A DNA stretch of 64,000 bases from Mantamonas sphyraenae STR306 (Eukaryota; Protista; CRuMs): NCBI GenBank assembly GCA_026936335.1, contig JAPMXV010000054.1, forward strand, positions 62,001 to 126,000, read 5' to 3'. This document shows, one piece after another, positions 5,095-60,649 of the stretch (within the stretch, counting starts at the first letter, position 1; the number at the start of each line of letters is the position of its first letter). The position numbers and the translations under genes were made by a program. The notes under the pieces are model-generated. The model was not told the DNA's origin. It did no database searches and was given only the letters and a program-made list of their open reading frames with translations.

Positions 5095-7683
<2,589 letters not shown>

Positions 7684-8799: not shown

Positions 8800-9706
8800 T
8801 TAGGCGGAGGAGGAGGAGGATTTGGTGGTGGGGGGTTGGCGGGGCTTGAAGATCGTCAACCGCCAGCTCGGTGACGATGCTGTTAAAGATTCCGAAGAGC
8901 GGTTCTTGGATTCGCCGGTGCTTAAAGATGCCAGGAACACAAGGATACCGACGACTTCGACTGCGCGCAAAGTAAATGAATAGGTCAAAAAATTCGTCTG
9001 CCGTCTGTGCTCGCCGCGATGTTGATCTGATGATGCTGAGAATTGCAAACAGTAGGAATATGCACGTAGAAGTGACCGTTAAACTTCCAATTCTCAATAA
9101 CCTACGCTTGGTTGCCTGATTTGTGCTGAATCGACGCAGTGCCAGAACCAACTTTCCGCCGTAGAAGAAAACCCCAATCATCACAGCCACCATGAGGAGT
9201 TGAAAAGACAATGCAAACACCTGCACCACACCAACATCCAGTTCACCACTGTCTCCCAGAAGTAGGATCATCGACATTGCTTGCCCTATCCATGACAAAA
9301 CCAACAGGCCTCCAAGGGAAATCCGTAGTTTCAACACAATTGGTTGAGAAGTTGCCGGGTTGCTTTGGGCCCAAATTTTGCCCCAGGTAAACACCAAGAA
9401 CAGAAACACATTGACGTAGAAGACACCGCCAATATCGAAAATAACAGTGAGGACCTCACGTGAGATGGTTTGGTCGAATGCGAGGCCATACCGGATCACC
9501 CGAGCAGTGGAAAGGAATGCACAGGCAATGTTGACGACTACCGCTGGTCGGGGGGATGTGGTCGGTGCCCAGTACATGGACAGTAGGTTGCCAACGGAGA
9601 ACAACACGAGAGCACCGAAGACAGTGATGCAGGTGATGAAGTACACCGTAAAGCCGATGTCGTTGCACCCTTCGATAATGTATCCTCGGTCGATTACTTC
9701 GCACAT
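8800..9706 (-). CDS. Seven-transmembrane protein, THH1/TOM1/TOM3 (DUF1084)/GPR137-like
   Basis: Six hydrophobic segments in ORF 8789-9706. A seventh (LRAVEVVGILVFLASL) continues in ORF 8800-9048 after a frameshift near 8965-8995. FFYGGKLVLALRRF...KRRLLRIGSLTVTSTCIFLL resembles the TOM1-family YGGRLFFMLRRF...KKLHEVGSVTAICFTCFL motif. The start codon is uncertain. Confidence 0.65.
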
Positions 9707-11350: not shown

Positions 11351-14300
11351 AAACACTCAAAAAGCTGGAGAAGCAGCGCAACAATCGACCACAGGGATCC
11401 AACAGTGTACAAGCCGTGATTGCCAACTGCATGATGGCCACGTTGCAAGTGGAAAATCTGCCTTTGGACCAAAGCTTGTTCACGCTAGGCGGTGACAGTA
11501 TTCTGAGTATGCAAGTGGTGCAGAGACTGCAACGCGAGGGGCTTCGTGTGACAAGCAGTCAGGTGTATGAGCTGCAGACGGTGCGTGCGCTGGCTAATGC
11601 CCTTCAAGAAGATGCGAACACACAGCAGGGTTCACACGAGGATGTTGCAGTGGCAGCTGTGACGCAGTATGACGTGCACGAATGTGACGGAGAGGCACTG
11701 AGCAGACTGTACGAAGAAGCACGGCGCGGGGTGGTTGGCGCAACGAAGGAGATTGTGATGTGTGGATTGGGCACGGGGTATGTGGACCTTGGGAAGCGTC
11801 TGCTGTGTTGTGGAGACGCTTGGGTGATGTGTGCATGTGGAGACGGGCGTGTGACGATGTCCTACCGCGCAGAAGCTGTGGAATCTCCGCTGGAAGTGAT
11901 GCGGGGTGTGCTTGTGGGACTGGGACGAGAGGCTGTGATGCCGATGTCGTCGATGCAGCAAGGGATGGTGTTTCACTCGCTGCACAGCAGTGGCTCTGGG
12001 AAGCGGGTCCAGGAAGGACCTGCTGGTACCCCGAGTGCTACGTGGTCTACAGCCATGTTGGGCAGCGTGGTGGATGGCCGAGCAGAGTACGTCGAACACG
12101 GATTGCTGGAGATGGACAACCTGGACCGTGTGCATGCGTACGCAGAGGCATGGGCAGGCGCTTGTTCATCGCATGCCATGCTGCATGCAAGTGTGGAGTG
12201 GCCGTTCATGCGGATCGAGCGTCAGAGCACACTGAGAGTGGACTACGTGCGCGCTGACGGCTCCGATGTGATGAGGACGGTTGAAGCACACAAGAGTATC
12301 CCGATGCGACTCGACTTGGCACCGCTGGTGCGATTGCTGCTGGTGTTGCACAGGGACACGGGGAAGACAACGGTCCTGGTTACATTCCACCACGCTGTGC
12401 TTGACGGGTGGTCAAACGCGCTGCTGTTGCGGGAGATCAGTCTGCGATACATGGAGCAGTACGAAGGAAGCGTGGGTCGGGCCACAGCTATCGCAGGACA
12501 CACCGACCAGTTAGAGTATGCATGGTGGCTGTGGAACTCGAGCAAGGGGGATGCGCGACGACACTTTGCAGAACGGTTGAAGGGCGGCCCGGGTGGCAGT
12601 TTGGTGATGAACGAAGTGCAGCGCGAGCCGGCGGAGGAAGCACCGACGAAAGCCGTGGAGCGGATCACTGTGAAAGCACAGCTGCCTGCGGACGGGAACG
12701 AGGCACTGGCAGTGACAGTGAACACGCGAGTGCTTGCGGCATGGGCACTTGTGCTAAGCGAGCTGTGTGGACAACAACGAGTGACGGTTGGCATGACACT
12801 GAGTGGCCGACCCGGAAGCGTGGAGTCGACATCAAGGCTGGTTGGATTGTATGTGTGCACACTGCCACTGTGTGTGGACGTGGAACTGGGACTGGGGCTA
12901 GATGGTTACCTGGAGCGGGTGATGCGAGAACAGCAGCGCTTGCAAGAGTTCCAACACTGTGGGTTGCCGGAAGTTGCAGGGTGGTGTGGATACGGGCAGG
13001 CTGGAGAAATGTTCGACAGCGTTTCTGTGTTTGAGAACTACCCTGGGATGGATGGAGAAGGTGGGGTTGGAGAGACACTCACGGAAGAGAGTGTGCGACA
13101 ACCGTTCCGTGTTCACAGTGCGACGAGTGAGGAAGTGACGAACTATCCCGTGCTGCTGGCATCGACTGTGGACAAGAGACGTGGCGTGGTGGAAGTGCAC
13201 ATGGAGTTTTCGAATGCAGGGGGAGGCATGGCACGTGCCGTGCGCGAACGGTTGGCGGAGCAACTGGAGGGGTACCTGCGTGTGCTGTGCAGGGTGAAGA
13301 AGGGGAAACCACAGACACAAGTGGGCCGCGTGGTGGGAAAGGGATGGACACGATCAGTTGGGATGGACGGAGTGACACGTGCACGTTCAGCGTTGTCAGG
13401 GCTGGGCGGGAGGACAGGAGAGGTGACTTTGCACGTGTGCAGCGTGAGCAAGGGTGAAGTACATCTGAGCCGTGGGATGGTGTACGCGATGGGGAGGCAG
13501 GTGGCAGCGGAGCTGACAAGCATGACAGTTGGGGCAGGACCTGGTACGGTGGTGGGAGTGTGTCTGGAAGCACAGAGTGTGTACACAGTGGCATGCTGTC
13601 TGGGAGTGTGGATGTGTGGAGCAGCAGTGCTGTGTATGGAACCGCGGAACCCGGACTCGAAGCTGGAGGCACTTGCGTTGGAGGCGCAGCCGTGTGCTGT
13701 GATCACGACGCCGGAGCTGGCGGATGCACGGAACTTGGGCAGGTTGTGCGGCAACAGGATTGTGTGTGTGGCAACCGAAGGAGTCCAGGTAGCACGCAGG
13801 GGAGTTGGTGGCAGCTGGGATGGTGAACGACCATGTGTGCGTGTGTGTGGTGGTTTGGTGGCGTATGTGATTGCGACGAGCGGAACGACGGCCGGCAGAA
13901 GCAAGCTTGTGCCTGTGACACACCGGGCGTGGATGAATACGTGCATGGACAGTCAAGTCGGTGTGGCTGGTGTAATGGTCAGCGATGTTGACAGCGGAGC
14001 AAGGGTGTACCAGTTTGCATCTTTGCAGTTTGATGCCAGCATGTACGAGATTGGCTGTGCTCTTGCACGAGGAAGTAACCATGGGCATTTGGTGCACCAG
14101 CGCGATGGGGAAGGACTTTTGGGTGGAATGTCGCTGCTGGACGAAAGGTGCACATTGGCATTGATACCTCCTGTGGTGTTGACCCTGGGATGTAGGGCGC
14201 GCTTGCTTGATGAAGAAGTGGTCGTGGACACACTGGTGACGGGTGGCGAAGCATGCAGTGCAGCAGTCGTGAACGAGTGGACCCGTGTGTGTGTGGGAGA

Positions 14301-17300
14301 ATGATCCATGCGTACGGGCCGTCGGAGGACGCAATTGTGTCAAGCGCACTGATGGTGGAAAGCTCTGGTGTGAAAGAGGCACCAGGGATTGGCAGTGCAC
14401 TTGACGGGAAGACAGCGTTGGTTCTGGACGGACTGATGCGCCCTCGACCGACGACAGGGGTAGGCCTGCTGCACATGACGGGAGTGGGGATCGCTCACGG
14501 ATACATGGGGCGGCCACGACTGACGGCAGAACGGTTCCTGCCGTTTGATGACGGCCTGGTGCTGTACAACACAGGAGATCTTGTGCGTGTACACTCTGCC
14601 GGGACGATGGAGTTTGTGGGGAGAAAGGACTTTCAGCTGAAGGTGCGCGGACACCGAGTGGAAGCACAGGCGGTGGAGGGTGTGCTGGAAACCCACGAGC
14701 GTGTGGCACAAGCAGTGGTCCGGAAGCATGGCACGGGTCTAGTTGGATACGTTGCGTGTGTTGGGGGCGTGGACGCAAGCATGGAGATGTTGCAAGCGAG
14801 CCTGTACGAGCAACTGCGAACCGCATTGCCGCCGTATGCGGTTCCGACCAGCGTGGTTGCACTGGACGCGATGCCAACAACGCTGAACGGTAAGATCGAC
14901 CTGCGTCGTCTTCCGAACCCAGGGGACACGGGTGTGCAGCTGGTGCGAAGCGAGTATGCGGCGGCCGAGAGCGAGATGGAAGTAACGGTGGCGAAAGCAT
15001 TTGGTGCTGTACTTGGGGTGGATGAGGTTGGGCTGGACGACAGCTTCTTCACGCTAGGCGGTGACAGTATTCTGAGTATGCAAGTGGTGCAGAGACTGCA
15101 ACGCGAGGGGCTGCGTGTGACAAGCAGTCAGGTGTATGAGCTGCAGACGGTGCGTGCGCTGGCTAATGCCCTTCAAGACGATGCGAACACACAGCAGGGT
15201 TCACACGAGGATGTTGCAGTGGCAGCTGTGACGCAGTATGACGTGCACGAATGTGACGGAGAGGCACTGAGCAGACTGTACGAAGAAGCACGGCGCGGGG
15301 TGGTTGGCGCAACGAAGGAGATTGTGATGTGTGGATTGGGCACGGGGTATGTGGACCTTGGGAAGCGTCTGCTGTGTTGTGGAGACGCTTGGGTGATGTG
15401 TGCATGTGGAGACGGGCGTGTGACGATGTCCTACCGCGCAGAAGCTGTGGAATCTCCGCTGGAAGTGATGCGGGGTGTGCTTGTGGGACTGGGACGAGAG
15501 GCTGTGATGCCGATGTCGTCGATGCAGCAAGGGATGGTGTTTCACTCGCTGCACAGCAGTGGCTCTGGGAAGCGGGTCCAGGAAGGACCTGCTGGTACCC
15601 CGAGTGCTACGTGGTCTACAGCCATGTTGGGCAGCGTGGTGGATGGCCGAGCAGAGTACGTCGAACACGGATTGCTGGAGATGGACAACCTGGACCGTGT
15701 GCATGCGTACGCAGAGGCATGGGCAGGCGCTTGTTCATCGCATGCCATGCTGCATGCAAGTGTGGAGTGGCCGTTCATGCGGATCGAGCGTCAGAGCACA
15801 CTGAGAGTGGACTACGTGCGCGCTGACGGCTCCGATGTGATGAGGACGGTTGAAGCACACAAGAGCATCCCGATGCGACTCGACTTGGCACCGCTGGTGC
15901 GATTGCTGCTGGTGTTGCACAGGGACACGGGGAAGACTACGGTACTGGTTACATTCCACCACGCTGTGCTTGACGGGTGGTCAAACGCGCTGCTGTTGCG
16001 GGAGATCAGTCTGCGATACATGGAGCAGTACGAAGGAAGCGTGGGTCGGGCCACAGCTATCGCAGGACACACCGACCAGTTAGAGTATGCATGGTGGCTG
16101 TGGAACTCGAGCAAGGGGGATGCGCGACGACACTTTGCAGAACGGTTGAAGGGCGGCCCGGGTGGCAGTTTGGTGATGAACGAAGTGCAGCGCGAGCCGG
16201 CGGAGGAAGCACCGACGAAAGCCGTGGAGCGGATCACTGTGAAAGCACAGCTGCCTGCGGACGGGAACGAGGCACTGGCAGTGACAGTGAACACGCGAGT
16301 GCTTGCGGCATGGGCACTTGTGCTAAGCGAGCTGTGTGGACAACAACGAGTGACGGTTGGCATGACACTGAGTGGCCGACCCGGAAGCGTGGAGTCGACA
16401 TCAAGGCTGGTTGGATTGTATGTGTGCACACTGCCACTGTGTGTGGACGTGGAACTGGGACTGGGGCTAGATGGTTACCTGGAGCGGGTGATGCGAGAAC
16501 AGCAGCGCTTGCAAGAGTTCCAACACTGTGGGTTGCCGGAAGTTGCAGGGTGGTGTGGATACGGGCAGGCTGGAGAAATGTTCGACAGCGTTTCTGTGTT
16601 TGAGAACTACCCTGGGATGGATGGAGAAGGTGGGGTTGGAGAGACACTCACGGAAGAGAGTGTGCGACAACCGTTCCGTGTTCACAGTGCGACGAGTGAG
16701 GAAGTGACGAACTATCCCGTGCTGCTGGCATCGACTGTGGACAAGAGACGTGGCGTGGTGGAAGTGCACATGGAGTTTTCGAATGCAGGGGGAGGCATGG
16801 CACGTGCCGTGCGCGAACGGTTGGCGGAGCAACTGGAGGGGTACCTGCGTGTGCTGTGCAGGGTGAAGAAGGGGATGCCACAGACACAAGTGGGCCGCGT
16901 GGTGGGAAAGGGATGGACACGATCAGTTGGGATGGACGGAGTGACACGTGCACGTTCAGCGTTGTCAGGGCTGGGCGGGAGGACAGGAGAGGTGACTTTG
17001 CACGTGTGCAGCGTGAGCAAGGGTGAAGTACATCTAAGCCGTGGGATGGTGTACGCGATGGGGAGGCAGGTGGCAGCGGAGCTGACAAGCATGACAGTTG
17101 GGGCAGGACCTGGTACGGTGGTGGGAGTGTGTCTGGAAGCACAGAGTGTGTACACAGTGGCATGCTGTCTGGGAGTGTGGATGTGTGGAGCAGCAGTGCT
17201 GTGTATGGAACCGCGGAACCCGGACTCGAAAGCTGGAGGCACTTGCGTTGGAGGCGCAGCCGTGTGCTGTGATCACGACGCCGGAGCTGGCGGATGCACG

Positions 17301-20300
17301 GAACTTGGGCAGGTTGTGCGGCAACAGGATTGTGTGTGTGGCAACCGAAGGAGTCCAGGTAGCACGCGGGGGAGTTGGTGGCAGCTGGGATGGTGAACGA
17401 CCATGTGTGCGTGTGTGTGGTGGTTTGGTGGCGTATGTGATTGCGACGAGCGGAACGACGGCCGGCAGAAGCAAGCTTGTGCCTGTGACACACCGGGCGT
17501 GGATGAATACGTGCATGGACAGTCAAGTCGGTGTGGCTGGTGTAATGGTCAGCGATGTTGACAGCGGAGTAAGGGTGTACCAGTTTGCATCTTTGCAGTT
17601 TGATGCCAGCATGTACGAGATTGGCTGTGCTCTTGCACGAGGAAGTAACCATGGGCATTTGGTGCACCAGCGCGATGGGGAAGGACTTTTGGGTGGAATG
17701 TCGCTGCTGGACGAAAGGTGCACGTTGGCATTGATACCTCCTGTGGTGTTGACCCTGGGATGTAGGGCGCGCTTGCTTGATGAAGAAGTGGTCGTGGACA
17801 CACTGGTGACGGGTGGCGAAGCATGCAGTGCAGCAGTCGTGAACGAGTGGACCCGTGTGTGTTGGAGAATGATCCATGCGTACGGGCCGTCGGAGGACGC
17901 AATTGTGTCAAGCGCACTGATGGTGGAAAGCTCTGGTGTGAAAGAGGCACCAGGGATTGGCAGTGCACTTGACGGGAAGACAGCGTTGGTTCTGGACGGA
18001 CTGATGCGCCCTCGACCGACGACAGGGGTAGGCCTGCTGCACATGACGGGAGTGGGGATCGCTCACGGATACATGGGGCGGCCACGACTGACGGCAGAAC
18101 GGTTCCTGCCGTTTGATGACGGCCTGGTGCTGTACAACACAGGAGATCTTGTGCGTGTACACTCTGCCGGGACGATGGAGTTTGTGGGGAGAAAGGACTT
18201 TCAGCTGAAGGTGCGCGGACACCGAGTGGAAGCACAGGCGGTGGAGGGTGTGCTGGAAACCCACGAGCGTGTGGCACAAGCAGTGGTCCGGAAGCATGGC
18301 ACGGGTCTAGTTGGATACGTTGCGTGTGTTGGGGGCGTGGACGCAAGCATGGAGATGTTGCAAGCGAGCCTGTACGAGCAACTGCGAACCGCATTGCCGC
18401 CGTATGCGGTTCCGACCAGCGTGGTTGCACTGGACGCGATGCCAACAACGCTGAACGGTAAGATCGACCTGCGTCGTCTTCCGAACCCAGGGGACACGGG
18501 TGTGCAGCTGGTGCGAAGCGAGTATGCGGCGGCCGAGAGCGAGATGGAAGTAACGGTGGCGAAAGCATTTGGTGCTGTACTTGGGGTGGATGAGGTTGGG
18601 CTGGACGACAGCTTCTTCACGCTAGGCGGTGACAGCATTCTGAGTATGCAAGTGGTGCAGAGACTGCAACGCGAGGGGCTGCGTGTGACAAGCAGTCAGG
18701 TGTATGAGCTGCAGACGGTGCGTGCGCTGGCTAATGCCCTTCAAGACGATGCGAACACACAGCAGGGTTCACACGAGGATGTTGCAGTGGCAGCTGTGAC
18801 GCAGTATGACGTGCACGAATGTGACGGAGAGGCACTGAGCAGACTGTACGAAGAAGCACGGCGCGGGGTGGTTGGCGCAACGAAGGAGATTGTGATGTGT
18901 GGATTGGGCACGGGGTATGTGGACCTTGGGAAGCGTCTGCTGTGTTGTGGAGACGCCTGGGTGATGTGTGCATGTGGAAACGGGCGTGTGACGATGTCCT
19001 ACCGCGCAGAAGCTGTGGAATCTCCGCTGGAAGTGATGCGGGGTGTGCTTGTGGGACTGGGACGAGAGGCTGTGATGCCGATGTCGTCGATGCAGCAAGG
19101 GATGGTGTTTCACTCGCTGCACAGCATTGGTTCTGGGAAGCGGGTCGAGGAAGAACCTGCTGGTACCCCGAGTGCTACGGGGTCTACAGCCATGTTGGGC
19201 AACGTGGTGGATGGCCGAGCAGAGTACGTCGAACACGGATTGCTGGAGATGGACAACCTGGACCGTGTGCATGCGTACGCAGAGGCATGGGCAGGCGCTT
19301 GTTCATCGCATGCCATGCTGCATGCAAGTGTGGAGTGGCCGTTCATGCGGATCGAGCGTCAGAGCACACTGAGAGTGGACTACGTGCGCGCTGACGGCTC
19401 CGATGTGATGAGGACGGTTGAAGCACACAAGAGCATCCCGATGCGACTCGACTTGGCACCGCTGGTGCGATTGCTGCTGGTGTTGCACAGGGACACGGGG
19501 AAGACAACGGTCCTGGTTACATTCCACCACGCTGTGCTTGACGGGTGGTCAAACGCTCTGCTGTTGCGGGAGATCAGTCTGCGATACATGGAGCAGTACG
19601 AAGGAAGCGTGGGTCGGGCCACAGCTATCGCAGGACACACCGACCAGTTAGAGTATGCATGGTGGCTGTGGAACTCGAGCAAGGGGGATGCGCGACGACA
19701 CTTTGCAGAACGGTTGAAGGGCGGCCCGGGTGGCAGTTTGGTGATGAACGAAGTGCAGCGCGAGCCGGTGGAGGAAGCACCGACGAAAGCCGTGGAGCGG
19801 ATCACTGTGAAAGCACAGCTGCCTGCGGACGGGAACGAGGCACTGGCAGTGACAGTGAACACGCGAGTGCTTGCGGCATGGGCACTTGTGCTAAGCGAGC
19901 TGTGTGGACAACAACGAGTGACGGTTGGCATGACACTGAGTGGCCGACCCGGAAGCGTGGAGTCGACATCAAGGCTGGTTGGATTGTATGTGTGCACACT
20001 GCCACTGTGTGTGGACGTGGAACTGGGACTGGGGCTAGATGGTTACCTGGAGCGGGTGATGCGAGAACAGCAGCGCTTGCAAGAGTTCCAACACTGTGGG
20101 TTGCCGGAAGTTGCAGGGTGGTGTGGATACGGGCAGGCTGGAGAAATGTTCGACAGCGTTTCTGTGTTTGAGAACTACCCTGGGATGGATGGAGAAGGTG
20201 GGGTTGGAGAGACACTCACGGAAGAGAGTGTGCGACAACCGTTCCGTGTTCACAGTGCGACGAGTGAGGAAGTGACGAACTATCCCGTGCTGCTGGCATC

Positions 20301-23300
20301 GACTGTGGACAAGAGACGTGGCGTGGTGGAAGTGCACATGGAGTTTTCGAATGCAGGGGAGGCATGGCACGTGCCGTGCGCGAACGGTTGGCGGAGCAAC
20401 TGGAGGGGTACCTGCGTGTGCTGTGCAGGGTGAAGAAGGGGAAACCACAGACACAAGTGGGCCGCGTGGTGGGAAAGGGATGGACACGATCAGTTGGGAT
20501 GGACGGAGTGACACGTGCACGTTCAGCGTTGTCAGGGCTGGGCGGGAGGACAGGAGAGGTGACTTTGCACGTGTGCAGCGTGAGCAAGGGTGAAGTACAT
20601 CTGAGCCGTGGGATGGTGTACGCGATGGGGAGGCAGGTGGCAGCGGAGCTGACAAGCATGACAGTTGGGGCAGGACCTGGTACGGTGGTGGGAGTGTGTC
20701 TGGAAGCACAGAGTGTGTACACAGTGGCATGCTGTCTGGGAGTGTGGATGTGTGGAGCAGCAGTGCTGTGTATGGAACCGCGGAACCCGGACTCGAAGCT
20801 GGAGGCACTTGCGTTGGAGGCGCAGCCGTGTGCTGTGATCACGACGCCGGAGCTGGCGGATGCACGGAACTTGGGCAGGTTGTGCGGCAACAGGATTGTG
20901 TGTGTGGCAACCGAAGGAGTCCAGGTAGCACGCGGGGGAGTTGGTGGCAGCTGGGATGGTGAACGACCATGTGTGCGTGTGTGTGGTGGTTTGGTGGCGT
21001 ATGTGATTGCGACGAGCGGAACGACGGCCGGCAGAAGCAAGCTTGTGCCTGTGACACACCGGGCGTGGATGAATACGTGCATGGACAGTCAAGTCGGTGT
21101 GGCTGGTGTAATGGTCAGCGATGTTGACAGCGGAGCAAGGGTGTACCAGTTTGCATCTTTGCAGTTTGATGCCAGCATGTACGAGATTGGCTGTGCTCTT
21201 GCACGAGGAAGTAACCATGGGCATTTGGTGCACCAGCGCGATGGGGAAGGACTTTTGGGTGGAATGTCGCTGCTGGACGAAAGGTGCACGTTGGCATTGA
21301 TACCTCCTGTGGTGTTGACCCTGGGATGTAGGGCGCGCTTGCTTGATGAAGAAGTGGTCGTGGACACACTGGTGACGGGTGGCGAAGCATGCAGTGCAGC
21401 AGTCGTGAACGAGTGGACCCGTGTGTGTGGGAGAATGATCCATGCGTACGGGCCGTCGGAGGACGCAATTGTGTCAAGCGCACTGATGGTGGAAAGCTCT
21501 GGTGTGAAAGAGGCACCAGGGATTGGCAGTGCACTTGACGGGAAGACAGCGTTGGTTCTGGACGGACTGATGCGCCCTCGACCGACGACAGGGGTAGGCC
21601 TGCTGCACATGACGGGAGTGGGGATCGCTCACGGATACATGGGGCGGCCACGACTGACGGCAGAACGGTTCCTGCCGTTTGATGACGGCCTGGTGCTGTA
21701 CAACACAGGAGATCTTGTGCGTGTACACTCTGCCGGGACGATGGAGTTTGTGGGGAGAAAGGACTTTCAGCTGAAGGTGCGCGGACACCGAGTGGAAGCA
21801 CAGGCGGTGGAGGGTGTGCTGGAAACCCACGAGCGTGTGGCACAAGCAGTGGTCCGGAAGCATGGCACGGGTCTAGTTGGATACGTTGCGTGTGTTGGGG
21901 GCGTGGACGCAAGCATGGAGATGTTGCAAGCAAGCCTGTACGAGCAACTGCGAAGCGCATTGCCGCCGTATGCGGTTCCGACCAGCGTGGTTGCACTGGA
22001 CGCGATGCCAACAACGCTGAACGGTAAGATCGACCTGCGTCGTCTTCCGAACCCAGGGGACACGGGTGTGCAGCTGGTGCGAAGCGAGTATGCGGCGGCC
22101 GAGAGCGAGATGGAAGTAACGGTGGCGAAAGCATTTGGTGCTGTACTTGGGGTGGATGAGGTTGGGCTGGACGACAGCTTCTTCACGCTAGGCGGTGACA
22201 GCATTCTGAGTATGCAAGTGGTGCAGAGACTGCAACGCGAGGGGCTGCGTGTGACAAGCAGTCAGGTGTATGAGCTGCAGACGGTGCGTGCGCTGGCTAA
22301 TGCCCTTCAAGACGATGCGAACACACAGCAGGGTTCACACGAGGATGTTGCAGTGGCAGCTGTGACGCAGTATGACGTGCACGAATGTGACGGAGAGGCA
22401 CTGAGCAGACTGTACGAAGAAGCACGGCGCGGGGTGGTTGGCGCAACGAAGGAGATTGTGATGTGTGGATTGGGCACGGGGTATGTGGACCTTGGGAAGC
22501 GTCTGCTGTGTTGTGGAGACGCTTGGGTGATGTGTGCATGTGGAGACGGGCGTGTGACGATGTCCTACCGCGCAGAAGCTGTGGAATCTCCGCTGGAAGT
22601 GATGCGGGGTGTGCTTGTGGGACTGGGACGAGAGGCTGTGATGCCGATGTCGTCGATGCAGCAAGGGATGGTGTTTCACTCGCTGCACAGCATTGGTTCT
22701 GGGAAGCGGGTCGAGGAAGAACCTGCTGGTACCCCGAGTGCTACGGGGTCTACAGCCATGTTGGGCAACGTGGTGGATGGCCGAGCAGAGTACGTCGAAC
22801 ACGGATTGCTGGAGATGGACAACCTGGACCGTGTGCATGCGTACGCAGAGGCATGGGCAGGCGCTTGTTCATCGCATGCCATGCTGCATGCAAGTGTGGA
22901 GTGGCCGTTCATGCGGATCGAGCGTCAGAGCACACTGAGAGTGGACTACGTGCGTGCTGACGGCTCCGATGTGATGAGGACGGTTGAAGCACACAAGAGC
23001 ATCCCGATGCGACTCGACTTGGCACCGCTGGTGCGATTGCTGCTGGTGTTGCACAGGGACACGGGGAAGACTACGGTACTGGTTACATTCCACCACGCTG
23101 TGCTTGACGGGTGGTCAAACGCTCTGCTGTTGCGGGAGATCAGTCTGCGATACATGGAGCAGTACGAAGGAAGCGTGGGTCGGGCCACAGCTATCGCAGG
23201 ACACACCGACCAGTTAGAGTATGCATGGTGGCTGTGGAACTCGAGCAAGGGGGATGCGCGACGACACTTTGCAGAACGGTTGAGGGCGGCCCGGGTGGCA

Positions 23301-47300: not shown

Positions 47301-50300
47301 GGGGTGGTTGGCGCAACGAAGGAGATTGTGATGTGTGGATTGGGCACGGGGTATGTGGACCTTGGGAAGCGTCTGCTGTGTTGTGGAGACGCTGGGTGAT
47401 GTGTGCATGTGGAAACGGGCGTGTGACGATGTCCTACCGCGCAGAAGCTGTGGAATCTCCGCTGGAAGTGATGCGGGGTGTGCTTGTGGGACTGGGACGA
47501 GAGGCTGTGATGCCGATGTCGTCGATGCAGCAAGGGATGGTGTTTCACTCGCTGCACAGCAGTGGTTCTGGGAAGCGGGTCGAGGAAGAACCTGCTGGTA
47601 CCCCGAGTGCTACGTGGTCTACAGCCATGTTGGGCAACGTGGTGGATGGCCGAGCAGAGTACGTCGAACACGGATTGCTGGAGATGGACAACCTGGACCG
47701 TGCACATGCGTACGCAGAGGCATGGGCAGGCGCTTGTTCATCGCATGCCATGCTGCATGCAAGTGTGGAGTGGCCGTTCATGCGGATCGAGCGTCAGAGC
47801 ACACTGAGAGTGGACTACGTGCGCGCTGACGGCTCCGATGTGATGAGGACGGTTGAAGCACACAAGAGCATCCCGATGCGACTCGACTTGGCACCGCTGG
47901 TGCGATTGCTGCTGGTGTTGCACAGGGACACGGGGAAGACAACGGTCCTGGTTACATTCCACCACGCTGTGCTTGACGGGTGGTCAAACGCTCTGCTGTT
48001 GCGGGAGATCAGTCTGCGATACATGGAGCAGTACGAAGGAAGCGTGGGTCGGGCCACAGCTATCGCAGGACACACCGACCAGTTAGAGTATGCATGGTGG
48101 CTGTGGAACTCGAGCAAGGGGGATGCGCGACGACACTTTGCAGAACGGTTGAAGGGCGGCCCGGGTGGCAGTTTGGTGATGAACGAAGTGCAGCGCGAGC
48201 CGGCGGAGGAAGCACCGACGAAAGCCGTGGAGCGGATCACTGTGAAAGCACAGCTGCCTGCGGACGGGAACGAGGCACTGGCAGTGACAGTGAACACGCG
48301 AGTGCTTGCGGCATGGGCACTTGTGCTAAGCGAGCTGTGTGGACAACAACGAGTGACGGTTGGCATGACACTGAGTGGCCGACCCGGAAGCGTGGAGTCG
48401 ACATCAAGGCTGGTTGGATTGTATGTGTGCACACTGCCACTGTGTGTGGACGTGGAACTGGGACTGGGGCTAGATGGTTACCTGGAGCGGGTGATGCGAG
48501 AACAGCAGCGCTTGCAAGAGTTCCAACACTGTGGGTTGCCGGAAGTTGCAGGGTGGTGTGGATACGGGCAGGCTGGAGAAATGTTCGACAGCGTTTCTGT
48601 GTTTGAGAACTACCCTGGGATGGATGGAGAAGGTGGGGTTGGAGAGACACTCACGGAAGAGAGTGTGCGACAACCGTTCCGTGTTCACAGTGCGACGAGT
48701 GAGGAAGTGACGAACTATCCCGTGCTGCTGGCATCGACTGTGGACAAGAGACGTGGCGTGGTGGAAGTGCACATGGAGTTTTCGAATGCAGGGGGAGGCA
48801 TGGCACGTGCCGTGCGCGAACGGTTGGCGGAGCAACTGGAGGGGTACCTGCGTGTGCTGTGCAGGGTGAAGAAGGGGAAACCACAGACACAAGTGGGCCG
48901 CGTGGTGGGAAAGGGATGGACACGATCAGTTGGGATGGACGGAGTGACACGTGCACGTTCAGCGTTGTCAGGGCTGGGCGGGAGGACAGGAGAGGTGACT
49001 TTGCACGTGTGCAGCGTGAGCAAGGGTGAAGTACATCTGAGCCGTGGGATGGTGTACGCGATGGGGAGGCAGGTGGCAGCGGAGCTGACAAGCATGACAG
49101 TTGGGGCAGGACCTGGTACGGTGGTGGGAGTGTGTCTGGAAGCACAGAGTGTGTACACAGTGGCATGCTGTCTGGGAGTGTGGATGTGTGGAGCAGCAGT
49201 GCTGTGTATGGAACCGCGGAACCCGGACTCGAAGCTGGAGGCACTTGCGTTGGAGGCGCAGCCGTGTGCTGTGATCACGACGCCGGAGCTGGCGGATGCA
49301 CGGAACTTGGGCAGGTTGTGCGGCAACAGGATTGTGTGTGTGGCAACCGAAGGAGTCCAGGTAGCACGCGGGGGAGTTGGTGGCAGCTGGGATGGTGAAC
49401 GACCATGTGTGCGTGTGTGTGGTGGTTTGGTGGCGTATGTGATTGCGACGAGCGGAACGACGGCCGGCAGAAGCAAGCTTGTGCCTGTGACACACCGGGC
49501 GTGGATGAATACGTGCATGGACAGTCAAGTCGGTGTGGCTGGTGTAATGGTCAGCGATGTTGACAGCGGAGCAAGGGTGTACCAGTTTGCATCTTTGCAG
49601 TTTGATGCCAGCATGTACGAGATTGGCTGTGCTCTTGCACGAGGAAGTAACCATGGGCATTTGGTGCACCAGCGCGATGGGGAAGGACTTTTGGGTGGAA
49701 TGTCGCTGCTGGACGAAAGGTGCACGTTGGCATTGATACCTCCTGTGGTGTTGACCCTGGGATGTAGGGCGCGCTTGCTTGATGAAGAAGTGGTCGTGGA
49801 CACACTGGTGACGGGTGGCGAAGCATGCAGTGCAGCAGTCGTGAACGAGTGGACCCGTGTGTGTTGGAGAATGATCCATGCGTACGGGCCGTCGGAGGAC
49901 GCAATTGTGTCAAGCGCACTGATGGTGGAAAGCTCTGGTGTGAAAGAGGCACCAGGGATTGGCAGTGCACTTGACGGGAAGACAGCGTTGGTTCTGGACG
50001 GGCTGATGCGCCCTCGACCGACGACAGGGGTAGGCCTGCTGCACATGACGGGAGTGGGGATCGCTCACGGATACATGGGGCGGCCACGACTGACGGCAGA
50101 ACGGTTCCTGCCGTTTGATGACGGCCTGGTGCTGTACAACACAGGAGATCTTGTGCGTGTACACGCTTCCGGGACGATGGAGTTTGTGGGGAGAAAGGAC
50201 TTTCAGTTGAAGGTGCGCGGACACCGAGTGGAAGCACAGGCGGTGGAGGGTGTGCTGGAAACCCACGAGCGTGTGGCACAAGCAGTGGTCCGGAAGCATG

Positions 50301-53300
50301 GCACGGGTCTAGTTGGATACGTTGCGTGTGTTGGGGGCGTGGACGCAAGCATGGAGATGTTGCAAGCAAGCCTGTACGAACAACTGCGAAGCGCACTGCC
50401 GCCGTATGCGGTTCCGACCAGCGTGGTTGCACTGGACGCGATGCCAACAACGCTGAACGGTAAGATCGACCTGCGTCGTCTTCCGAACCCAGGGGACACG
50501 GGTGTGCAGCTGGTGCGAAGCGAGTATGCGGCGGCCGAGAGCGAGATGGAAGTAACGGTGGCGAAAGCATTTGGTGCTGTACTTGGGGTGGATGAGGTTG
50601 GGCTGGACGACAGCTTCTTCACGCTAGGCGGTGACAGCATTCTGAGTATGCAAGTGGTGCAGAGACTGCAACGCGAGGGGCTGCGTGTGACAAGCAGTCA
50701 GGTGTATGAGCTGCAGACGGTGCGTGCGCTGGCTAATGCCCTTCAAGACGATGCGAACACACAGCAGGGTTCACACGAGGATGTTGCAGTGGCAGCTGTG
50801 ACGCAGTATGACGTGCACGAATGTGACGGAGAGGCACTGAGCAGACTGTACGAAGAAGCACGGCGCGGGGTGGTTGGCGCAACGAAGGAGATTGTGATGT
50901 GTGGATTGGGCACGGGGTATGTGGACCTTGGGAAGCGCCTGCTGTGTTGTGGAGACGCTTGGGTGATGTGTGCATGTGGAGACGGGCGTGTGACGATGTC
51001 CTACCGCGCAGAAGCTGTGGAATCTCCGCTGGAAGTGATGCGGGGTGTGCTTGTGGGACTGGGACGAGAGGCTGTGATGCCGATGTCGTCGATGCAGCAA
51101 GGGATGGTGTTTCACTCGCTGCACAGCAGTGGTTCTGGGAAGCGGGTCGAGGAAGAACCTGCTGGTACCCCGAGTGCTACGTGGTCTACAGCCATGTTGG
51201 GCAACGTGGTGGATGGCCGAGCAGAGTACGTCGAACATGGATTGCTGGAGATGGACAACCTGGACCGTGCACATGCGTACGCAGAGGCATGGGCGTGCGC
51301 TTGTTCATCGCATGCCATGCTGCATGCAAGTGTGGAGTGGCCGTTCATGCGGATCGAGCGTCAGAGCACACTGAGAGTGGACTACGTGCGTGCTGACGGC
51401 TCCGATGTGATGAGGACGGTTGAAGCACACAAGAGCATCCCGATGCGACTCGACTTGGCACCGCTGGTGCGATTGCTGCTGGTGTTGCACAGGGACACGG
51501 GGAAGACTACGGGTACTGGTTACATTCCACCACGCTGTGCTTGACGGGTGGTCAAACGCGCTGCTGTTGCGGGAGATCAGTCTGCGATACATGGAGCAGT
51601 ACGAAGGAAGCGTGGGTCGGGCCACAGCTATCGCAGGACACACCGACCAGTTAGAGTATGCATGGTGGCTGTGGAACTCGAGCAAGGGGGATGCGCGACG
51701 ACACTTTGCAGAACGGTTGAAGGGCGGCTCGGGTGGCAGTTTGGTGATGAACGAAGTGCAGCGCGAGCCGGTGGAGGAAGCACCGACGAAAGCCGTGGAG
51801 CGGATCACTGTGAAAGCACAGCTGCCTGCGGACGGGAACGAGGCACTGGCAGTGACAGTGAACACGCGAGTGCTTGCGGCATGGGCACTTGTGCTAAGCG
51901 AGCTGTGTGGACAACAACGAGTGACGGTTGGCATGACACTGAGTGGCCGACCCGGAAGCGTGGAGTCGACATCAAGGCTGATTGGATTGTATGTGTGCAC
52001 ACTGCCACTGTGTGTGGACGTGGAACTGGGACTGGGGCTAGATGGTTACCTGGAGCGGGTGATGCGAGAACAGCAGCGCTTGCAAGAGTTCCAACACTGT
52101 GGGTTGCCGGAAGTTGCAGGGTGGTGTGGATACGGGCAGGCTGGAGAAATGTTCGACAGCGTTTCTGTGTTTGAGAACTACCCTGGGATGGATGGAGAAG
52201 GTGGGGTTGGAGAGACACTCACGGAAGAGAGTGTGCGACAACCGTTCCGTGTTCACAGTGCGACGAGTGAGGAAGTGACGAACTATCCCGTGCTGCTGGC
52301 ATCGACTGTGGACAAGAGACGTGGCGTGGTGGAAGTGCACATGGAGTTTTCGAATGCAGGGGGAGGCATGGCACGTGCCGTGCGCGAACGGTTGGCGGAG
52401 CAACTGGAGGGGTACCTGCGTGTGCTGTGCAGGGTGAAGAAGGGGATGCCACAGACACAAGTGGGCCGCGTGGTGGGAAAGGGATGGACACGATCAGTTG
52501 GGATGGACGGAGTGACACGTGCACGTTCAGCGTTGTCAGGGCTGGGCGGGAGGACAGGAGAGGTGACTTTGCACGTGTGCAGCGTGAGCAAGGGTGAAGT
52601 ACATCTGAGCCGTGGGATGGTGTACGCGATGGGGAGGCAGGTGGCAACGGAGCTGACAAGCATGACAGTTGGGGCAGGACCTGGTACGGTGGTGGGAGTG
52701 TGTCTGGAAGCACAGAGTGTGTACACAGTGGCATGCTGTCTGGGAGTGTGGATGTGTGGAGCAGCAGTGTTGTGCATGGAACCGCGTAACCCGGACTCGA
52801 AGCTGGAGGCACTTGCGTTGGAGGCGCAGCCGTGTGCTGTGATCACGACGCCGGAGCTGGCGGATGCACGGAACTTGGGCAGGTTGTGCGGCAACAGGAT
52901 TGTGTGTGTGGCAACCGAAGGAGTCCAGGTAGCACGCGGGGGAGTTGGTGGCAGCTGGGATGGTGTGAACGACCATGTGTGCGTGTGTGTGGTGGTTTGG
53001 TGGCGTATGTGATTGCGACGAGCGGAACGACGGCCGGCAGAAGCAAGCTTGTGCCTGTGACACACCGGGCATGGATGAATACGTGCTTCGCAGTCAAGTC
53101 GAAGTGGCTTGTCCACGTCAACACGTGTCGAGCAAATGTTTTGCTCTTTGCAGTTTGACGCCAGCATGTACGAGACTGGGATGTGGGGCTTGCATTGGAA
53201 GCAACCAAGTGGTATTTGGTGCATTTGAACGATGGCTTGGAAGGACTTTTGGAGAGCTCGTGCGTTCGAAAGGTTGCGTCCGTACCACCTGTGCTGTTGG

Positions 53301-56300
53301 CGAGGCACGTAGTACGCGGATCTGCTCGGTTGAAGAACTGGTCGTGGTACACTGGTGACGGGTGGCTAGCATGCAGTGCAGCTGTCGTGAACGATGGACC
53401 CGGCTCCTTGGAGACATGATCCATGCGTACGGGCCGTCGGAAGACGCGATTGTGTCAAGCGCACTGACTGGTGAAAGCTCTGGTGTGAATGAGGCACCAA
53501 GCATTCGCAGTGCACTTGACGGGAAGACAGCGTTGGTTCTGGACGGGCTGATGCGCCCTCGACCGACGACAGGGGTAGGCCTGCTGCACATGACGGGAGT
53601 GGGGATCGCTCACGGATACATGGGGCGGCCACGACTGACGGCAGAACGGTTCCTGCCGTTTGATGACGGCCTGGTGCTGTACAACACAGGAGATCTTGTG
53701 CGTGTACACGCTTCCGGGACGATGGAGTTTGTGGGGAGAAAGGACTTTCAGCTGAAGGTGCGCGGACACCGAGTGGAAGCACAGGCGGTGGAGGGTGTGC
53801 TGGAAACCCACGAGCGTGTGGCACAAGCAGTGGTCCGGAAGCATGGCACGGGTCTAGTTGGATACGTTGCGTGTGTTGGGGGCGTGGACGCAAGCATGGA
53901 GATGTTGCAAGCAAGCCTGTACGAGCAACTGCGAAGCGCATTGCCGCCGTATGCGGTTCCGACCAGCGTGGTTGCACTGGACGCGATGCCAACAACGCTG
54001 AACGGTAAGATCGACCTGCGTCGTCTTCCGAACCCAGGGGACACGGGTGTGCAGCTGGTGCGAAGCGAGTATGCGGCGGCCGAGAGCGAGATGGAAGTAA
54101 CGGTGGCGAAAGCATTTGGTGCTGTACTTGGGGTGGATGAGGTTGGGCTGGACGACAGCTTCTTCACGCTAGGTGGTGACAGCATTCTGAGTATGCAAGT
54201 GGTGCAGAGACTGCAACGCGAGGGGCTGCGTGTGACAAGCAGTCAGGTGTATGAGCTGCAGACGGTGCGTGCGCTGGCTAATGCCCTTCAAGACGATGCG
54301 AACACACAGCAGGGTTCACACGAGGATGTTGCAGTGGCAGCTGTGACGCAGTATGACGTGCACGAATGTGACGGAGAGGCACTGAGCAGACTGTACGAAG
54401 AAGCACGGCGCGGGGTGGTTGGCGCAACGAAGGAGATTGTGATGTGTGGATTGGGCACGGGGTATGTGGACCTTGGGAAGCGCCTGCTGTGTTGTGGAGA
54501 CGCTTGGGTGATGTGTGCATGTGGAGACGGGCGTGTGACGATGTCCTACCGCGCAGAAGCTGTGGAATCTCCGCTGGAAGTGATGCGGGGTGTGCTTGTG
54601 GGACTGGGACGAGAGGCTGTGATGCCGATGTCGTCGATGCAGCAAGGGATGGTGTTTCACTCGCTGCACAGCAGTGGTTCTGGGAAGCGGGTCGAGGAAG
54701 AACCTGCTGGTACCCCGAGTGCTACGTGGTCTACAGCCATGTTGGGCAACGTGGTGGATGGCCGAGCAGAGTACGTCGAACATGGATTGCTGGAGATGGA
54801 CAACCTGGACCGTGCACATGCGTACGCAGAGGCATGGGCGTGCGCTTGTTCATCGCATGCCATGCTGCATGCAAGTGTGGAGTGGCCGTTCATGCGGATC
54901 GAGCGTCAGAGCACACTGAGAGTGGACTACGTGCGTGCTGACGGCTCCGATGTGATGAGGACGGTTGAAGCACACAAGAGCATCCCAATGCGACTCGACT
55001 TGGCACCGCTGGTGCGATTGCTGCTGGTGTTGCACAGGGACACGGGGAAGACTACGGTACTGGTTACATTCCACCACGCTGTGCTTGACGGGTGGTCAAA
55101 CGCTCTGCTGTTGCGGGAGATCAGTCTGCGATACATGGAGCAGTACGAAGGAAGCGTGGGTCGGGCCACAGCTATCGCAGGACACACCGACCAGTTAGAG
55201 TATGCATGGTGGCTGTGGAACTCGAGCAAGGGGGATGCGCGACGACACTTTGCAGAACGGTTGAAGGGCGGCTCGGGTGGCAGTTTGGTGATGAACGAAG
55301 TGCAGCGCGAGCCGGTGGAGGAAGCACCGACGAAAGCCGTGGAGCGGATCACTGTGAAAGCACAGCTGCCTGCGGACGGGAACGAGGCACTGGCAGTGAC
55401 AGTGAACACGCGAGTGCTTGCGGCATGGGCACTTGTGCTAAGCGAGCTGTGTGGACAACAACGAGTGACGGTTGGCATGACACTGAGTGGCCGACCCGGA
55501 AGCGTGGAGTCGACATCAAGGCTGATTGGATTGTATGTGTGCACACTGCCACTGTGTGTGGACGTGGAACTGGGACTGGGGCTAGATGGTTACCTGGAGC
55601 GGGTGATGCGAGAACAGCAGCGCTTGCAAGAGTTCCAACACTGTGGGTTGCCGGAAGTTGCAGGGTGGTGTGGATACGGGCAGGCTGGAGAAATGTTCGA
55701 CAGCGTTTCTGTGTTTGAGAACTACCCCGGAATGGATGGAGAAGGTGGGGTTGGAGAGACACTCACGGAAGAGAGTGTGCGACAACCGTTCCGTGTTCAC
55801 AGTGCGACGAGTGAGGAAGTGACGAACTATCCCGTGCTGCTGGCATCGACTGTGGACAAGAGACGTGGCGTGGTGGAAGTGCACATGGAGTTTTCGAATG
55901 CAGGGGGAGGCATGGCACGTGCCGTGCGCGAACGGTTGGCGGAGCAACTGGAGGGGTACCTGCGTGTGCTGTGCAGGGTGAAGAAGGGGATGCCACAGAC
56001 ACAAGTGGGCCGCGTGGTGGGAAAGGGATGGACACGATCAGTTGGGATGGACGGAGTGACACGTGCACGTTCAGCGTTGTCAGGGCTGGGCGGGAGGACA
56101 GGAGAGGTGACTTTGCACGTGTGCAGCGTGAGCAAGGGTGAAGTACATCTGAGCCGTGGGATGGTGTACGCGATGGGGAGGCAGGTGGCAACGGAGCTGA
56201 CAAGCATGACAGTTGGGGCAGGACCTGGTACGGTGGTGGGAGTGTGTCTGGAAGCACAGAGTGTGTACACAGTGGCATGCTGTCTGGGAGTGTGGATGTG

Positions 56301-58452
56301 TGGAGCAGCAGTGTTGTGCATGGAACCGCGTAACCCGGACTCGAAGCTGGAGGCACTTGCGTTGGAGGCGCAGCCGTGTGCTGTGATCACGACGCCGGAG
56401 CTGGCGGATGCACGGAACTTGGGCAGGTTGTGCGGCAACAGGATTGTGTGTGTGGCAACCGAAGGAGTCCAGGTAGCACGCGGGGGAGTTGGTGGCAGCT
56501 GGGATGGTGAACGACCATGTGTGCGTGTGTGTGGTGGTTTGGTGGCGTATGTGATTGCGACGAGCGGAACGACGGCCGGCAGAAGCAAGCTTGTGCCTGT
56601 GACACACCGGGCATGGATGAATACGTGCTTCGCTTACTCGAAGTACTTGTCCACGTCAACACGTGTCGGGCAAATGTTGTCTATGCAGTTCGACGCGAGC
56701 ATGCTTGAACTGGGATGGGGCTTGATTGGAGGCAGCCAAGTGGTACATTGTGATTTGAACGATGGCTTGTTGTACGTGTTGGAGAGCTCGTGCGTTCAGG
56801 TTGCGTCCGTACCACCGGTGCTGTTGGCGAGGCACGAGTACGCGGATCTCTCGGTTGAAGGACTGCAAATGGTATCTGCAGGAGGGGAAGCTACAACGAA
56901 AGAGATGCTGCGCAAATGGGCGGGCTCCTTGGTATACATACAAGCGTACGGTCCTTCGGAAGACTCGATTGTCTCAACGATGACTGTGTTGGGTGAATAT
57001 GACACACCGAGCATCGGTAGTGCACTTGACGGGAAGACAGCGTTGGTTCTGGACGGACTGATGCGCCCTCGACCGACGACAGGGGTAGGCCTGCTGCACG
57101 TGACGGGAGTGGGGATCGCTCACGGATACATGGGGCGGCCACGACTGACGGCAGAACGGTTCCTGCCGTTTGATGACGGCCTGGTGCTGTACAACACAGG
57201 AGATCTTGTGCGTGTACACGCTTCCGGGACGATGGAGTTTGTGGGGAGAAAGGACTTTCAGCTGAAGGTGCGCGGACACCGAGTGGAAGCACAGGCGGTG
57301 GAGGGTGTGCTGGAAACCCACGAGCGTGTGGCACAAGCAGTGGTCCGGAAGCATGGCACGGGTCTAGTTGGATACGTTGCGTGTGTTGGGGGCGTGGACG
57401 CAAGCATGGAGATGTTGCAAGCAAGCCTGTACGAGCAACTGCGAACCGCATTGCCGCCGTATGCGGTTCCGACCAGCGTGGTTGCACTGGACGCGATGCC
57501 AACAACGCTGAACGGTAAGATCGACTTGCGTCGTCTTCCGAACCCAGGGGACACGGGTGTGCAGCTGGTGCGAAGCGAGTATGCGGCGGCCGAGAGCGAG
57601 ATGGAAGTAACGGTGGCGAAAGCATTTGGTGCTGTACTTGGGTTGGATGAGGTTGGGCTGGACGACAGCTTCTTCACGCTAGGCGGTGACAGCATTCTGA
57701 GTATGCAAGTGGTGCAGAGACTGCAACGCGAGGGGCTGCGTGTGACAAGCAGTCAGGTGTATGAGCTGCAGACGGTGCGGGCTTTGGCGTCTTTTCATGC
57801 CCCCCATTTGAAACGTGGGTCAGTTTTGATTGAACTGACAAAGAATGACGGTCCGGTGGTTGTACTCTTCCCTGGTGCTGCAACAACTTTTCATTGCTTC
57901 GAGCGTTTGATTGAGGAAGCAACCCCTGCGCACCATTTGTACGCTGTTGATGACGGCTATCTTTACGGTCGTTCTGATGCTCATGCGACTTTGATGGATC
58001 TGGCGGTCGCCGTTAGCTCGGAGCTGTTGTTGTTCGTTCCGGTTGTGGAGAACGTCCAACTTGTGGGCTGGTCGTACGGTGGTGCAGTCGCGCATGAAGT
58101 TGGCGTGCTGTGTCATCATACAGTGACTCAAGTCACCTTGTTGGACGCCCCTGTGTGCCCTGTGAGTGTGCCGTGGACCGTTTCTCCTGGATCCAATGGC
58201 AACGACACTGACTTGATAACTGCCGACGCTTCGTTGCGTCATCATCACTTACTGGAACACGTGACCAGTTCTTCAGTTCAACGGACTGTGTTGGTGCTGA
58301 GCGATTCAGCACGGCGCACCAATCTCCATGACTACCATCGCTGGGGCGAATTCATTGAGACATCAGACTTTCACATTGTTGCCGTTCCAGGTGACCATCA
58401 CGGCATGTTAGATTCTTCAGAATTCATTGACGTGGTGATGCGACTGCAGTAA
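9766..58452 (+). CDS. Giant multimodular nonribosomal (lipo)peptide synthetase: FAAL-like - T - (C-A-T)x13 - TE, ~16,200 aa; intron 11265-11315; many apparent assembly frameshifts
   Basis: 14 carrier motifs FTLGGDSILSM (GG codons at 11488, 15057, 18625, 22191, 25709, 29284, 32854, 36418, ~39987, 43495, 47061, 50627, 54172, 57682). 13 C domains with HHAVLDGWS. 13 A domains with YVIATSGTT, FDAS, AYGPSE, YNTGDL, GRKDFQLKVRGHRVE and NGKIDL. Terminal thioesterase present. All on one strand with no intergenic gaps. Confidence 0.9.
11265..11315 (+). other. 51-nt spliceosomal intron within the NRPS loading domain
   Basis: GTAAGT donor at 11265, branch-like TGCTCAC at ~11299-11305, AAGCAG acceptor ending at 11315. 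It contains in-frame stop codons. Removing it fuses ORF 9739-11268 in frame to ORF 11416-14304 and restores AT|C-GCA-AAA-ACG-ACA-AGT-GGG-AAA (I-A-K-T-T-S-G-K). Confidence 0.85.
24652..25048 (+). other. Module 4: B-type A-domain specificity subdomain (indel-rich copy)
   Basis: Matches the B-type DNA (cttcgcttactcg...gacacaccaagcatcggt) with many small indels and short A-type intrusions. Confidence 0.75.
42445..42834 (+). other. Module 9: B-type A-domain specificity subdomain
   Basis: 390 bp encoding FAYSKYLSTSTRVGQMLSMQFDASMLELGW...SAGGEAT...IQAYGPSEDSIVSTMTVLGEYDTPSIG in place of the 447-bp A-type segment. Confidence 0.9.
53087..53508 (+). other. Module 12: fine-grained A/B mosaic specificity subdomain (frame-broken)
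   Basis: Short tracts of A-type and B-type sequence alternate, and the unit length is intermediate (3545 bp). Confidence 0.75.
56629..57018 (+). other. Module 13: B-type A-domain specificity subdomain
   Basis: Essentially identical to 42445-42834 and lies within the uninterrupted ORF 53362-58452. Confidence 0.9.
57780..58452 (+). other. Terminal type I thioesterase domain of the NRPS
   Basis: VVLFPGAA, nucleophile elbow LVGWSYGG (GxSxG), LLDAP acid and VPGDHHGML histidine give a complete catalytic triad. Stop TAA at 58450-58452. Confidence 0.9.
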
Positions 58453-60538: not shown

Positions 60539-60557
60539 CCCAGCGCACACACTCCCT

Positions 60558-60620
60558 CCCCTACCTTGCCCCTACCTTGCCCCTACCTTGCCCCTCCCTT
60601 GCCCCTCCCCTGCTTGCCCC
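60558..60620. repeat. 11-bp tandem repeat (CCCCTACCTTG x3 plus degenerate copies) in the DDX24/MMAB divergent intergenic region
   Basis: Seen directly: cccctaccttg cccctaccttg cccctaccttg cccctcccttg cccctcccctg. Confidence 0.8.
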
Positions 60621-60649
60621 ATGCCACCCAACCAATATCAACACACACC

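Follow-up and report, generated by a model that had tools for sequence, protein, structure and literature searches.

Modules of non-ribosomal peptide synthetases (NRPSs), like those of polyketide synthases (PKSs), are known to undergo concerted evolution, the most extreme cases being the syringopeptin NRPS and the mycolactone PKS (Medema et al., 2014, PMC4256081). In these cases, module duplication is followed by internal recombination that homogenises the copies, and functionally diverged parts escape. In the mycolactone PKS genes (mlsA1, mlsA2, and mlsB) on plasmids of Mycobacterium ulcerans, like domains share >98.5% nucleotide identity, and recombination-driven replacement, deletion mutants, and strain-specific products have been described for this locus (PMC2569948). 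Its homogeneity is credited to frequent recombination, and differences are limited to specificity-determining domain types. A phylogenetic study of bacterial NRPSs located a sharp recombination boundary in the FFxxGGxS motif of the carrier (T) domain and defined exchange units (XUT units) composed of a split T domain, a condensation (C) and an adenylation (A) domain, and a second split T domain (split-T / C-A / split-T; Bozhueyuek et al., 10.1101/2022.12.02.518901). Also, swaps of A-core subdomains that adjoin core motifs are widespread (Baunach et al., 2021, PMC8097286; Cruesemann 2013 and Kries 2015, cited there). Here we describe an NRPS locus from the protist Mantamonas sphyraenae STR306, located in a stretch of 64,000 nucleotides (the window) that corresponds to positions 62,001 to 126,000 of contig JAPMXV010000054.1 in the assembly GCA_026936335.1. 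The locus appears to work like the homogenised assembly lines of bacteria and would differ from them by its location in a eukaryotic nucleus, its strict single-period array, and a two-state cassette that has no identifiable donor.

Homogenised lines such as the mycolactone PKS and the syringopeptin NRPS are thus already known in bacteria, where the cases compiled by Medema et al. were inferred from protein trees. The present case differs in being a strict tandem array of 13 complete NRPS modules that share ~99.4% DNA identity and lie together in one 47-kb exon of a nuclear gene in a eukaryote, with an escaping part of 405-462 bp. The mycolactone lines are bacterial plasmid PKSs, do not form a strict single-period array, and swap whole domains; in the nuclear NRPS described here the variable part is a subdomain cassette. 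Photorhabdus has a comparably large NRPS in one polypeptide, the kolossin synthetase (15 modules, ~1.8 MDa); this enzyme is bacterial, and its modules are not known to be near-identical at the DNA level.

The locus is probably best explained as a nuclear two-exon gene for a lipopeptide synthetase, in which a 13-module array arose by unequal recombination in T-domain cores, evolves in concert, and contains two cassette types. In the unequal recombination that would have created the array, one carrier-domain core paired with another, and the 5' breakpoint was at FFxxGGxS. Continuing unequal exchange or gene conversion would then keep the units almost identical, and two types would persist that differ only in a substrate-pocket cassette (A4-A5) located between motifs A3 and A6 of the A domain. 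The encoded synthetase would consist of a loader resembling fatty acyl-AMP ligases (FAAL), a carrier, 13 C-A-T modules, and a thioesterase (TE)-like tail, with exons of ~48.6 kb in total.

A 1-kb probe taken from the array matched 13 copies, which were spaced 3506-3570 bp apart and were 99.0-100% identical. The array is composed of 13 head-to-tail periods plus 113 bp (Table 1), and the T-domain core is present in it 14 times. At the 5' edge, a backward walk from unit 2 to unit 1 gave 45-50 identical bases per 50 as far as position 11473 and chance-level similarity beyond it. At the 3' edge, unit identity holds to 57779 and unrelated sequence begins at 57780. We also used contigs (Logan) of four public sequencing runs from one study, X1 to X4; the short-read contigs of runs X1 and X4 exit the array exactly at 57779/57780. 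A 13-unit array with both edges inside a T domain, as proposed in an earlier note made from the letters of the window, was thereby confirmed by the probe and the edge comparisons and, at the 3' edge, by the short-read contigs. The array escaped Tandem Repeats Finder, whose longest period is 500. No second contig with array sequence was present in the genome assembly (25 Mb, 78 contigs).

Table 1. Features of the window (positions count from its first letter).
Feature	Position	Strand	Remarks
1974-aa open reading frame, Cdc5/Cef1 Myb domains	2482-8406	-	Myb domains from residue 1185
THH1/TOM1/TOM3-like membrane protein gene	8789-9706	-	head-to-head with the start of the synthetase gene; gap of a few tens of bases
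Predicted exon 1: FAAL-like loading adenylation domain	9766-11264	+	reading frame opens at 9739, first ATG at 9766; Pfam AMP-binding, E 6e-33
Candidate 51-nt spliceosomal intron, GTAAGT...CAG	11265-11315	+	in-frame TAA inside
Predicted exon 2, start: A10 region, linker, unique N-terminal half of loading carrier T0	11316-11472	+	from translation
Tandem array	11473-57779	+	13 units + 113 bp, each unit T(C-terminal part)-C-A-T(N-terminal part)
U1-U3, type A	11473-22175	+	starts 11473, 15042, 18610
U4, type B	22176-25693	+	cassette 24636-25048, noisy; 5' backbone type A-like
U5-U8, type A	25694-39968	+	starts 25694, 29269, 32839, 36403
U9, type B	39969-43479	+	cassette 42429-42834
U10 and U11, type A	43480-50611	+	starts 43480, 47046; reference type A cassette 49501-49963
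U12	50612-54156	+	5' backbone U9/U13-like; cassette 53071-53508, interleaved A/B mosaic
U13, type B	54157-57666	+	cassette 56613-57018; inside unbroken reading frame 53362-58452
Extra 113 bp	57667-57779	+	14th T-domain core copy; GGDS at 57682
Unique C-terminal half of last carrier, TE-like alpha/beta-hydrolase tail, stop codon	57780-58452	+	PP-binding; GxSxG at 58066
DDX24/MAK5 helicase gene	58460-59896	-	best matches 44-47% identical, in early-diverging fungi and animals
PduO/MMAB-type cobalamin adenosyltransferase gene	60038-61417	+	240-aa N-terminal extension
C-rich 75-bp tandem repeat	61460-61603		1.9 copies, 85% matches

The 5' boundary of the array (11472/11473) falls between ...LPLDQ and S-[L/F]-F-T-L-G-G-D-S, that is, at the start of the FFxxGGxS motif. 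This is the natural recombination boundary reported for bacterial NRPSs and agrees with the earlier proposal that the T domain served as the crossover register. The likeness to the XUT units extends to their layout, since the array begins with the initial serine of S-[F/L]-F-T-L-G-G-D-S and each repeated unit has the composition split-T / C-A / split-T. The two ends do not lie at one site, however: the 3' boundary is 113 bp, or 37 codons, deeper in the T domain than the motif. Exchange may have taken place anywhere within this shared 113 bp. As a consequence of the 3' boundary position, the half of T0 that faces the loader and the half of the last T domain that faces the TE stay unique, which would make functional sense under the interface model of 10.1101/2022.12.02.518901. 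A further difference is that the work on XUT units concerns exchange between different bacterial synthetases and not the amplification of modules inside one gene.

The corrected gene is predicted, from its sequence, to encode a FAAL-T-(C-A-T)x13-TE-like lipopeptide synthetase of ~16,200 aa. The two exons were translated separately, and the frame was assessed from these translations. Across the candidate intron the frame is kept, the A10 lysine (TSGKPNR) falls in exon 2, and the loader is joined to T0. The nearest solved structures of the loader are fatty acyl-AMP ligases, namely 7r7e-g, 3kxw, 3pbk, and FadD23/28/32. The true unit lengths of 3567 and 3510 bp are both multiples of 3, and the corrected coding sequence, in which these lengths were used (48,612 or 48,669 nt), stays in frame.

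An unbroken open reading frame (ORF) at 47333-51544, which exceeds one period, contains Pfam Condensation, AMP-binding, AMP-binding_C, and PP-binding domains. In a three-frame motif count, the carrier motif GGDS[IL] was found 14 times, one per period, and the condensation motif HHxxxDG in all 13 units. Motifs A5, A7, A8, and A10 were present in 13 of 13 units, and A3 and A4 in 12 of 13, the exception being the noisy unit U4. The A domains matched LgrA, TycA, McyB, and GrsA in the PDB (E down to 9e-59). The Condensation match (E ~1e-32) covers profile positions 98-411 only. Motifs and Pfam matches taken together thus provide the adenylation, carrier, and condensation domains of a modular type I NRPS. 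A segment of ~100 residues that separates the carrier from the matched C core carries no assignment (47333-47840 and the equivalent place in every unit). The genome has one other C-domain locus (L001, G000:C4:142132-145917), where ORF 1006-3042 encodes a Condensation domain (E 3e-58) in a protein of 678 aa that stands alone; this protein could act in trans with the synthetase.

The units fall into two types. Nine units of 3567 bp belong to type A, and three units of 3510 bp (U4, U9, and U13) belong to type B. The difference resides in the cassette, which measures 462 bp in type A and 405 bp in type B (135-154 residues). In a global alignment, the two versions differ over columns 2482-2965 by 181 substitutions and 67 gap columns. 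The encoded proteins are identical up to and including A3, only ~46% identical over the stretch that follows, and identical once more from a point shortly before A6. The cassette spans A4, A5, and the pocket-lining positions, and the divergence is confined to the A core. The two types therefore differ by a segment that lies between conserved motifs and covers the pocket, as is the case in A-core subdomain swaps; there, too, only the pocket part differs, and neither the C-A linker nor the A-sub domain nor the T interface is affected. The present case differs in that no donor could be identified, the type B cassette matching only array units in the 25-Mb genome, and in that both versions coexist as repeated states in one array. 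The cassettes of U9 and U13 are one base apart, and their proteins are 100% identical.

Under the GrsA numbering that we take to apply here (anchors FDAS, PP turn, GGE, and YGPSE), the pocket would read D-A-Y-L-V-G-A-I-V-K in type A and D-A-L-S-S-G-A-I-V-K in type B. From U1 to U13, the modules follow one another as a a a B a a a a B a a ? B. Given this two-type order, the product is predicted to be an N-acyl tridecapeptide composed of two kinds of residues. The word depth of the type A cassette relative to that of the backbone was 0.73, 0.67, 0.72, and 0.72 in the four runs; the expectation for 9 of 13 units is 0.69. The earlier idea of one amplified module thus remains valid with respect to tandem amplification, but not with respect to a single uniform module, since there are two types that differ by an ancient, saturated cassette. 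It follows that the cassette was either shielded from homogenisation by selection or grafted in and then spread. The cassette may be under selection.

The backbone, defined as the 2912 gap-free alignment columns outside the cassette, contains 51 variable columns, 35 of which vary in a state common to at least two units; these are the few dozen recurring single-nucleotide polymorphisms (SNPs) that the earlier note had described. Mean pairwise difference in the backbone is 0.61% and the maximum is 1.3%, which means that units are ~99.4% identical. The same-function domains therefore lie above the level of at least ~98% DNA identity that characterises a line of the mycolactone PKS type. All 13 SNP haplotypes are distinct and differ at 4-38 positions. 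In the pairwise comparison of units, synonymous diversity (piS) was 1.25%, in line with the near-identity at synonymous sites noted before, and nonsynonymous diversity (piN) was 0.38%. The resulting piN/piS ratio of 0.31 shows that the units are under purifying selection. Each of the 29 variants seen in the short-read contigs equals the letter of other units at the same column. The substitutions between units are real.

Divergence between units grows with their separation along the array (Mantel r=0.53, p=0.0004), and neighbouring units are more alike (p=0.025). Ten of 16 singletons belong to the edge units U1 and U13. The four-gamete test was failed by 284 of 595 informative site pairs, including 12 adjacent pairs. 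The 5' backbone of U4 is nearest to U3, U7, and U6 (4-6 differences, versus 14-19 to U9/U13), and its 3' backbone is nearest to U9, with one difference. The 5' backbone of U12 is nearest to U13 and U9. With the SNP phasing of the assembly, U4 is a putative recombinant that combines a type A backbone with a type B cassette. Four-gamete failures and U4 thus point to exchange between modules, as read through SNP phasing in an error-prone long-read assembly. These patterns make it likely that the array was amplified and that, with the cassette kept apart, its units have since gone on engaging in local unequal exchange or gene conversion. Recent unequal crossing-over or concerted evolution, as suggested in the earlier note, is accordingly backed by the exchange signatures (the Mantel test, the four-gamete test, edge singletons, and U4) but falls short as an account of one amplified module.

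A recent burst of whole-unit duplications could have produced such an array with no continuing exchange, if the type B cassette had entered by a single graft and duplication of the B unit had followed. The very low piS, the single base that separates the U9 and U13 cassettes, and the 5' backbone haplotype common to U9, U12, and U13 are as this scenario would have it. The four-gamete failures, among them those of adjacent pairs, and the presence of a B cassette in U4 on a backbone nearest to type A neighbours speak against it, both to the extent that the SNP phasing is correct, and the genome has no donor of the cassette. We consider a burst of this kind unlikely and prefer amplification with continuing exchange.

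About 33 indels of one or two bases are located outside the cassette, nearly all of them in or beside homopolymers, and cut the plus-strand frame into more than 25 ORF pieces. Taken at face value, this fragmentation would suit a decaying pseudogene array with real frameshifts and a dead gene. Contigs of X1-X4 were aligned to window positions 24001-30000. They contradict the indels of U5 at 25739, 26062, 26292, 26347, 26771, 27119, 27905, 28067, and 28522 in every covering run; eight of these sites were covered by three or four runs and 25739 by X2 only. The frame-breaking indels are assembly errors. The pseudogene explanation was rejected once each tested U5 indel had proved absent from the contigs; with all catalytic motifs intact and a piN/piS ratio of 0.31, it is scarcely credible.

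The assembly also mixes units. At 246 columns diagnostic for A or B, the U12 cassette has 97 A, 131 B, and 18 other states, with 47 switches in 437 bp. No recombination history yields a pattern of 47 switches, and the consensus of a mixed pile-up does; for this reason, we take the interleaved cassette of U12 to be an artefact of consensus calling over mixed reads. The U4 cassette, of type B, has A states at 12 columns and other states at 20, a milder form of the same problem. A third cassette type was considered for U12 and rejected in favour of this fine A/B interleave. The statement that all 13 units match almost base for base therefore applies to the backbone and does not apply to the cassettes of U4, U9, and U13 and to the mosaic of U12. 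The practical lesson is that what looked like pseudogenisation, and what looked like a third module type, are artefacts of the assembly.

The same observations raise the question of whether the array is real in kind but misassembled in size or order, with A and B units collapsed into U12 (at least 14 units) or with alleles or subpopulations blended. The 47 flips of U12, which look like the consensus of a mixed pile-up, and the aberrant states of U4 favour this, and 9/13, 10/14, and 10/13 would account more or less equally well for a type A depth share of 0.67-0.73. The distinctness of all 13 SNP haplotypes and the lack of array sequence on any other genome contig argue the other way, and an error of this type would alter the count and not the nature of the locus. 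We regard such a misassembly as a real possibility, though one that falls short of even chances. Alternatively, the mixed signal in U12 may be biological, with alleles or cells that differ in unit number or cassette state, as in a coding minisatellite. The signal is compatible with this without being diagnostic of it, and we consider this rather doubtful. If true, the gene would specify a set of lipopeptides that vary in length and sequence, and ongoing unequal exchange in the register of the T domain, together with the two-state pocket cassettes, would be the natural equivalent, in a eukaryote, of XUT and subdomain-swap engineering.

Another possibility is that the assembler expanded a locus of only 1-3 real copies. 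The short-read contigs do collapse the array to one unit, breaking at variable columns, and the assembly is error-prone. However, columns 523-598, a span of 75 bp, contain five or more local haplotypes, the contig variants have intermediate depth shares (0.24-0.5), and the type A cassette share of ~0.7 requires both types to be present at roughly 2:1. Every SNP in the reads recurs in the assembly, and long-read assemblers usually collapse repeats rather than expand them. An expansion artefact is therefore very improbable, and an amplified array remains the preferred explanation. Differences between strains, as suggested by the contig paths of X3 and X4, were rejected, these contigs being chimeric walks through the collapsed repeat; in an X4 contig, for example, letters of U12/U13 are present at column 331 and missing at columns 633-692.

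Several observations weigh against our interpretation of the locus as a two-exon gene with 13 modules of two types. The count of 13 is provisional, being that of the assembly. Since reads of different units were mixed at U12 and U4, the SNP phasing behind the Mantel, four-gamete, and U4 arguments may be partly chimeric. None of the contigs of the four runs lies on the central part of the type B cassette of U4 (~24601-25000), and type B is known from the assembly, where two copies are 100% identical in protein. The intron is a candidate read from the genome sequence, and expression of the gene is presumed. The matches of the tail to Abhydrolase_6 (23.7 bits) and Thioesterase (22.1 bits) are both under the Pfam cut-offs. 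Finally, in run X4 the word depth of the 3' flank contig is 76.4 and that of the array contigs 26.6, a ratio that misfits DNA with 13 copies unless X4 is RNA.

The flank contig of X4 (2295 bp) starts in the last 30 letters of the array and enters the unique 3' flank; on window coordinates it would extend from 57750 to ~60044, across the DDX24 gene. Contigs of X3 and X4 are short (20 kb or less), and both runs were labelled as DNA by guess. They may be RNA-seq runs, and if X4 is RNA, then the array would be transcribed. An estimate of copy number from contig word depth was rejected, since the stretch to which contigs were aligned (24001-30000) held no single-copy sequence for comparison; the sole flank contig, that of X4, points the wrong way for DNA.

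If our interpretation holds, the locus delimits naturally exchanged units more sharply than comparative studies can. One is the split-T / C-A / split-T unit with its breakpoint at FFxxGGxS; the second is the pocket cassette of 135-154 residues between A3 and A6. The locus would offer a natural control for the rules of XUT and subdomain-swap engineering and a candidate system in which to watch the length and sequence of a peptide evolve by repeat dynamics.

Close relatives of the synthetase were sought in three ways. Identities did not exceed 36% in a word search and 35% in an exhaustive HMMER search over 1.84 billion representatives; in metagenome contigs they were 22-29%, apart from one fragment of 29 residues at 52%. 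The search with the DDX24/MAK5 helicase showed a host without a close sequenced relative in a collection of 5.8 billion proteins.

Both flanks of the array are eukaryotic and encode a Cdc5/Cef1-type Myb protein, a THH1/TOM-like membrane protein, a DDX24/MAK5 helicase, a cobalamin adenosyltransferase, and a WD40 protein. The ORF with Cdc5/Cef1 domains is probably over-extended or spans two genes. The adenosyltransferase suggests an adenosylcobalamin-dependent metabolism in this eukaryote.

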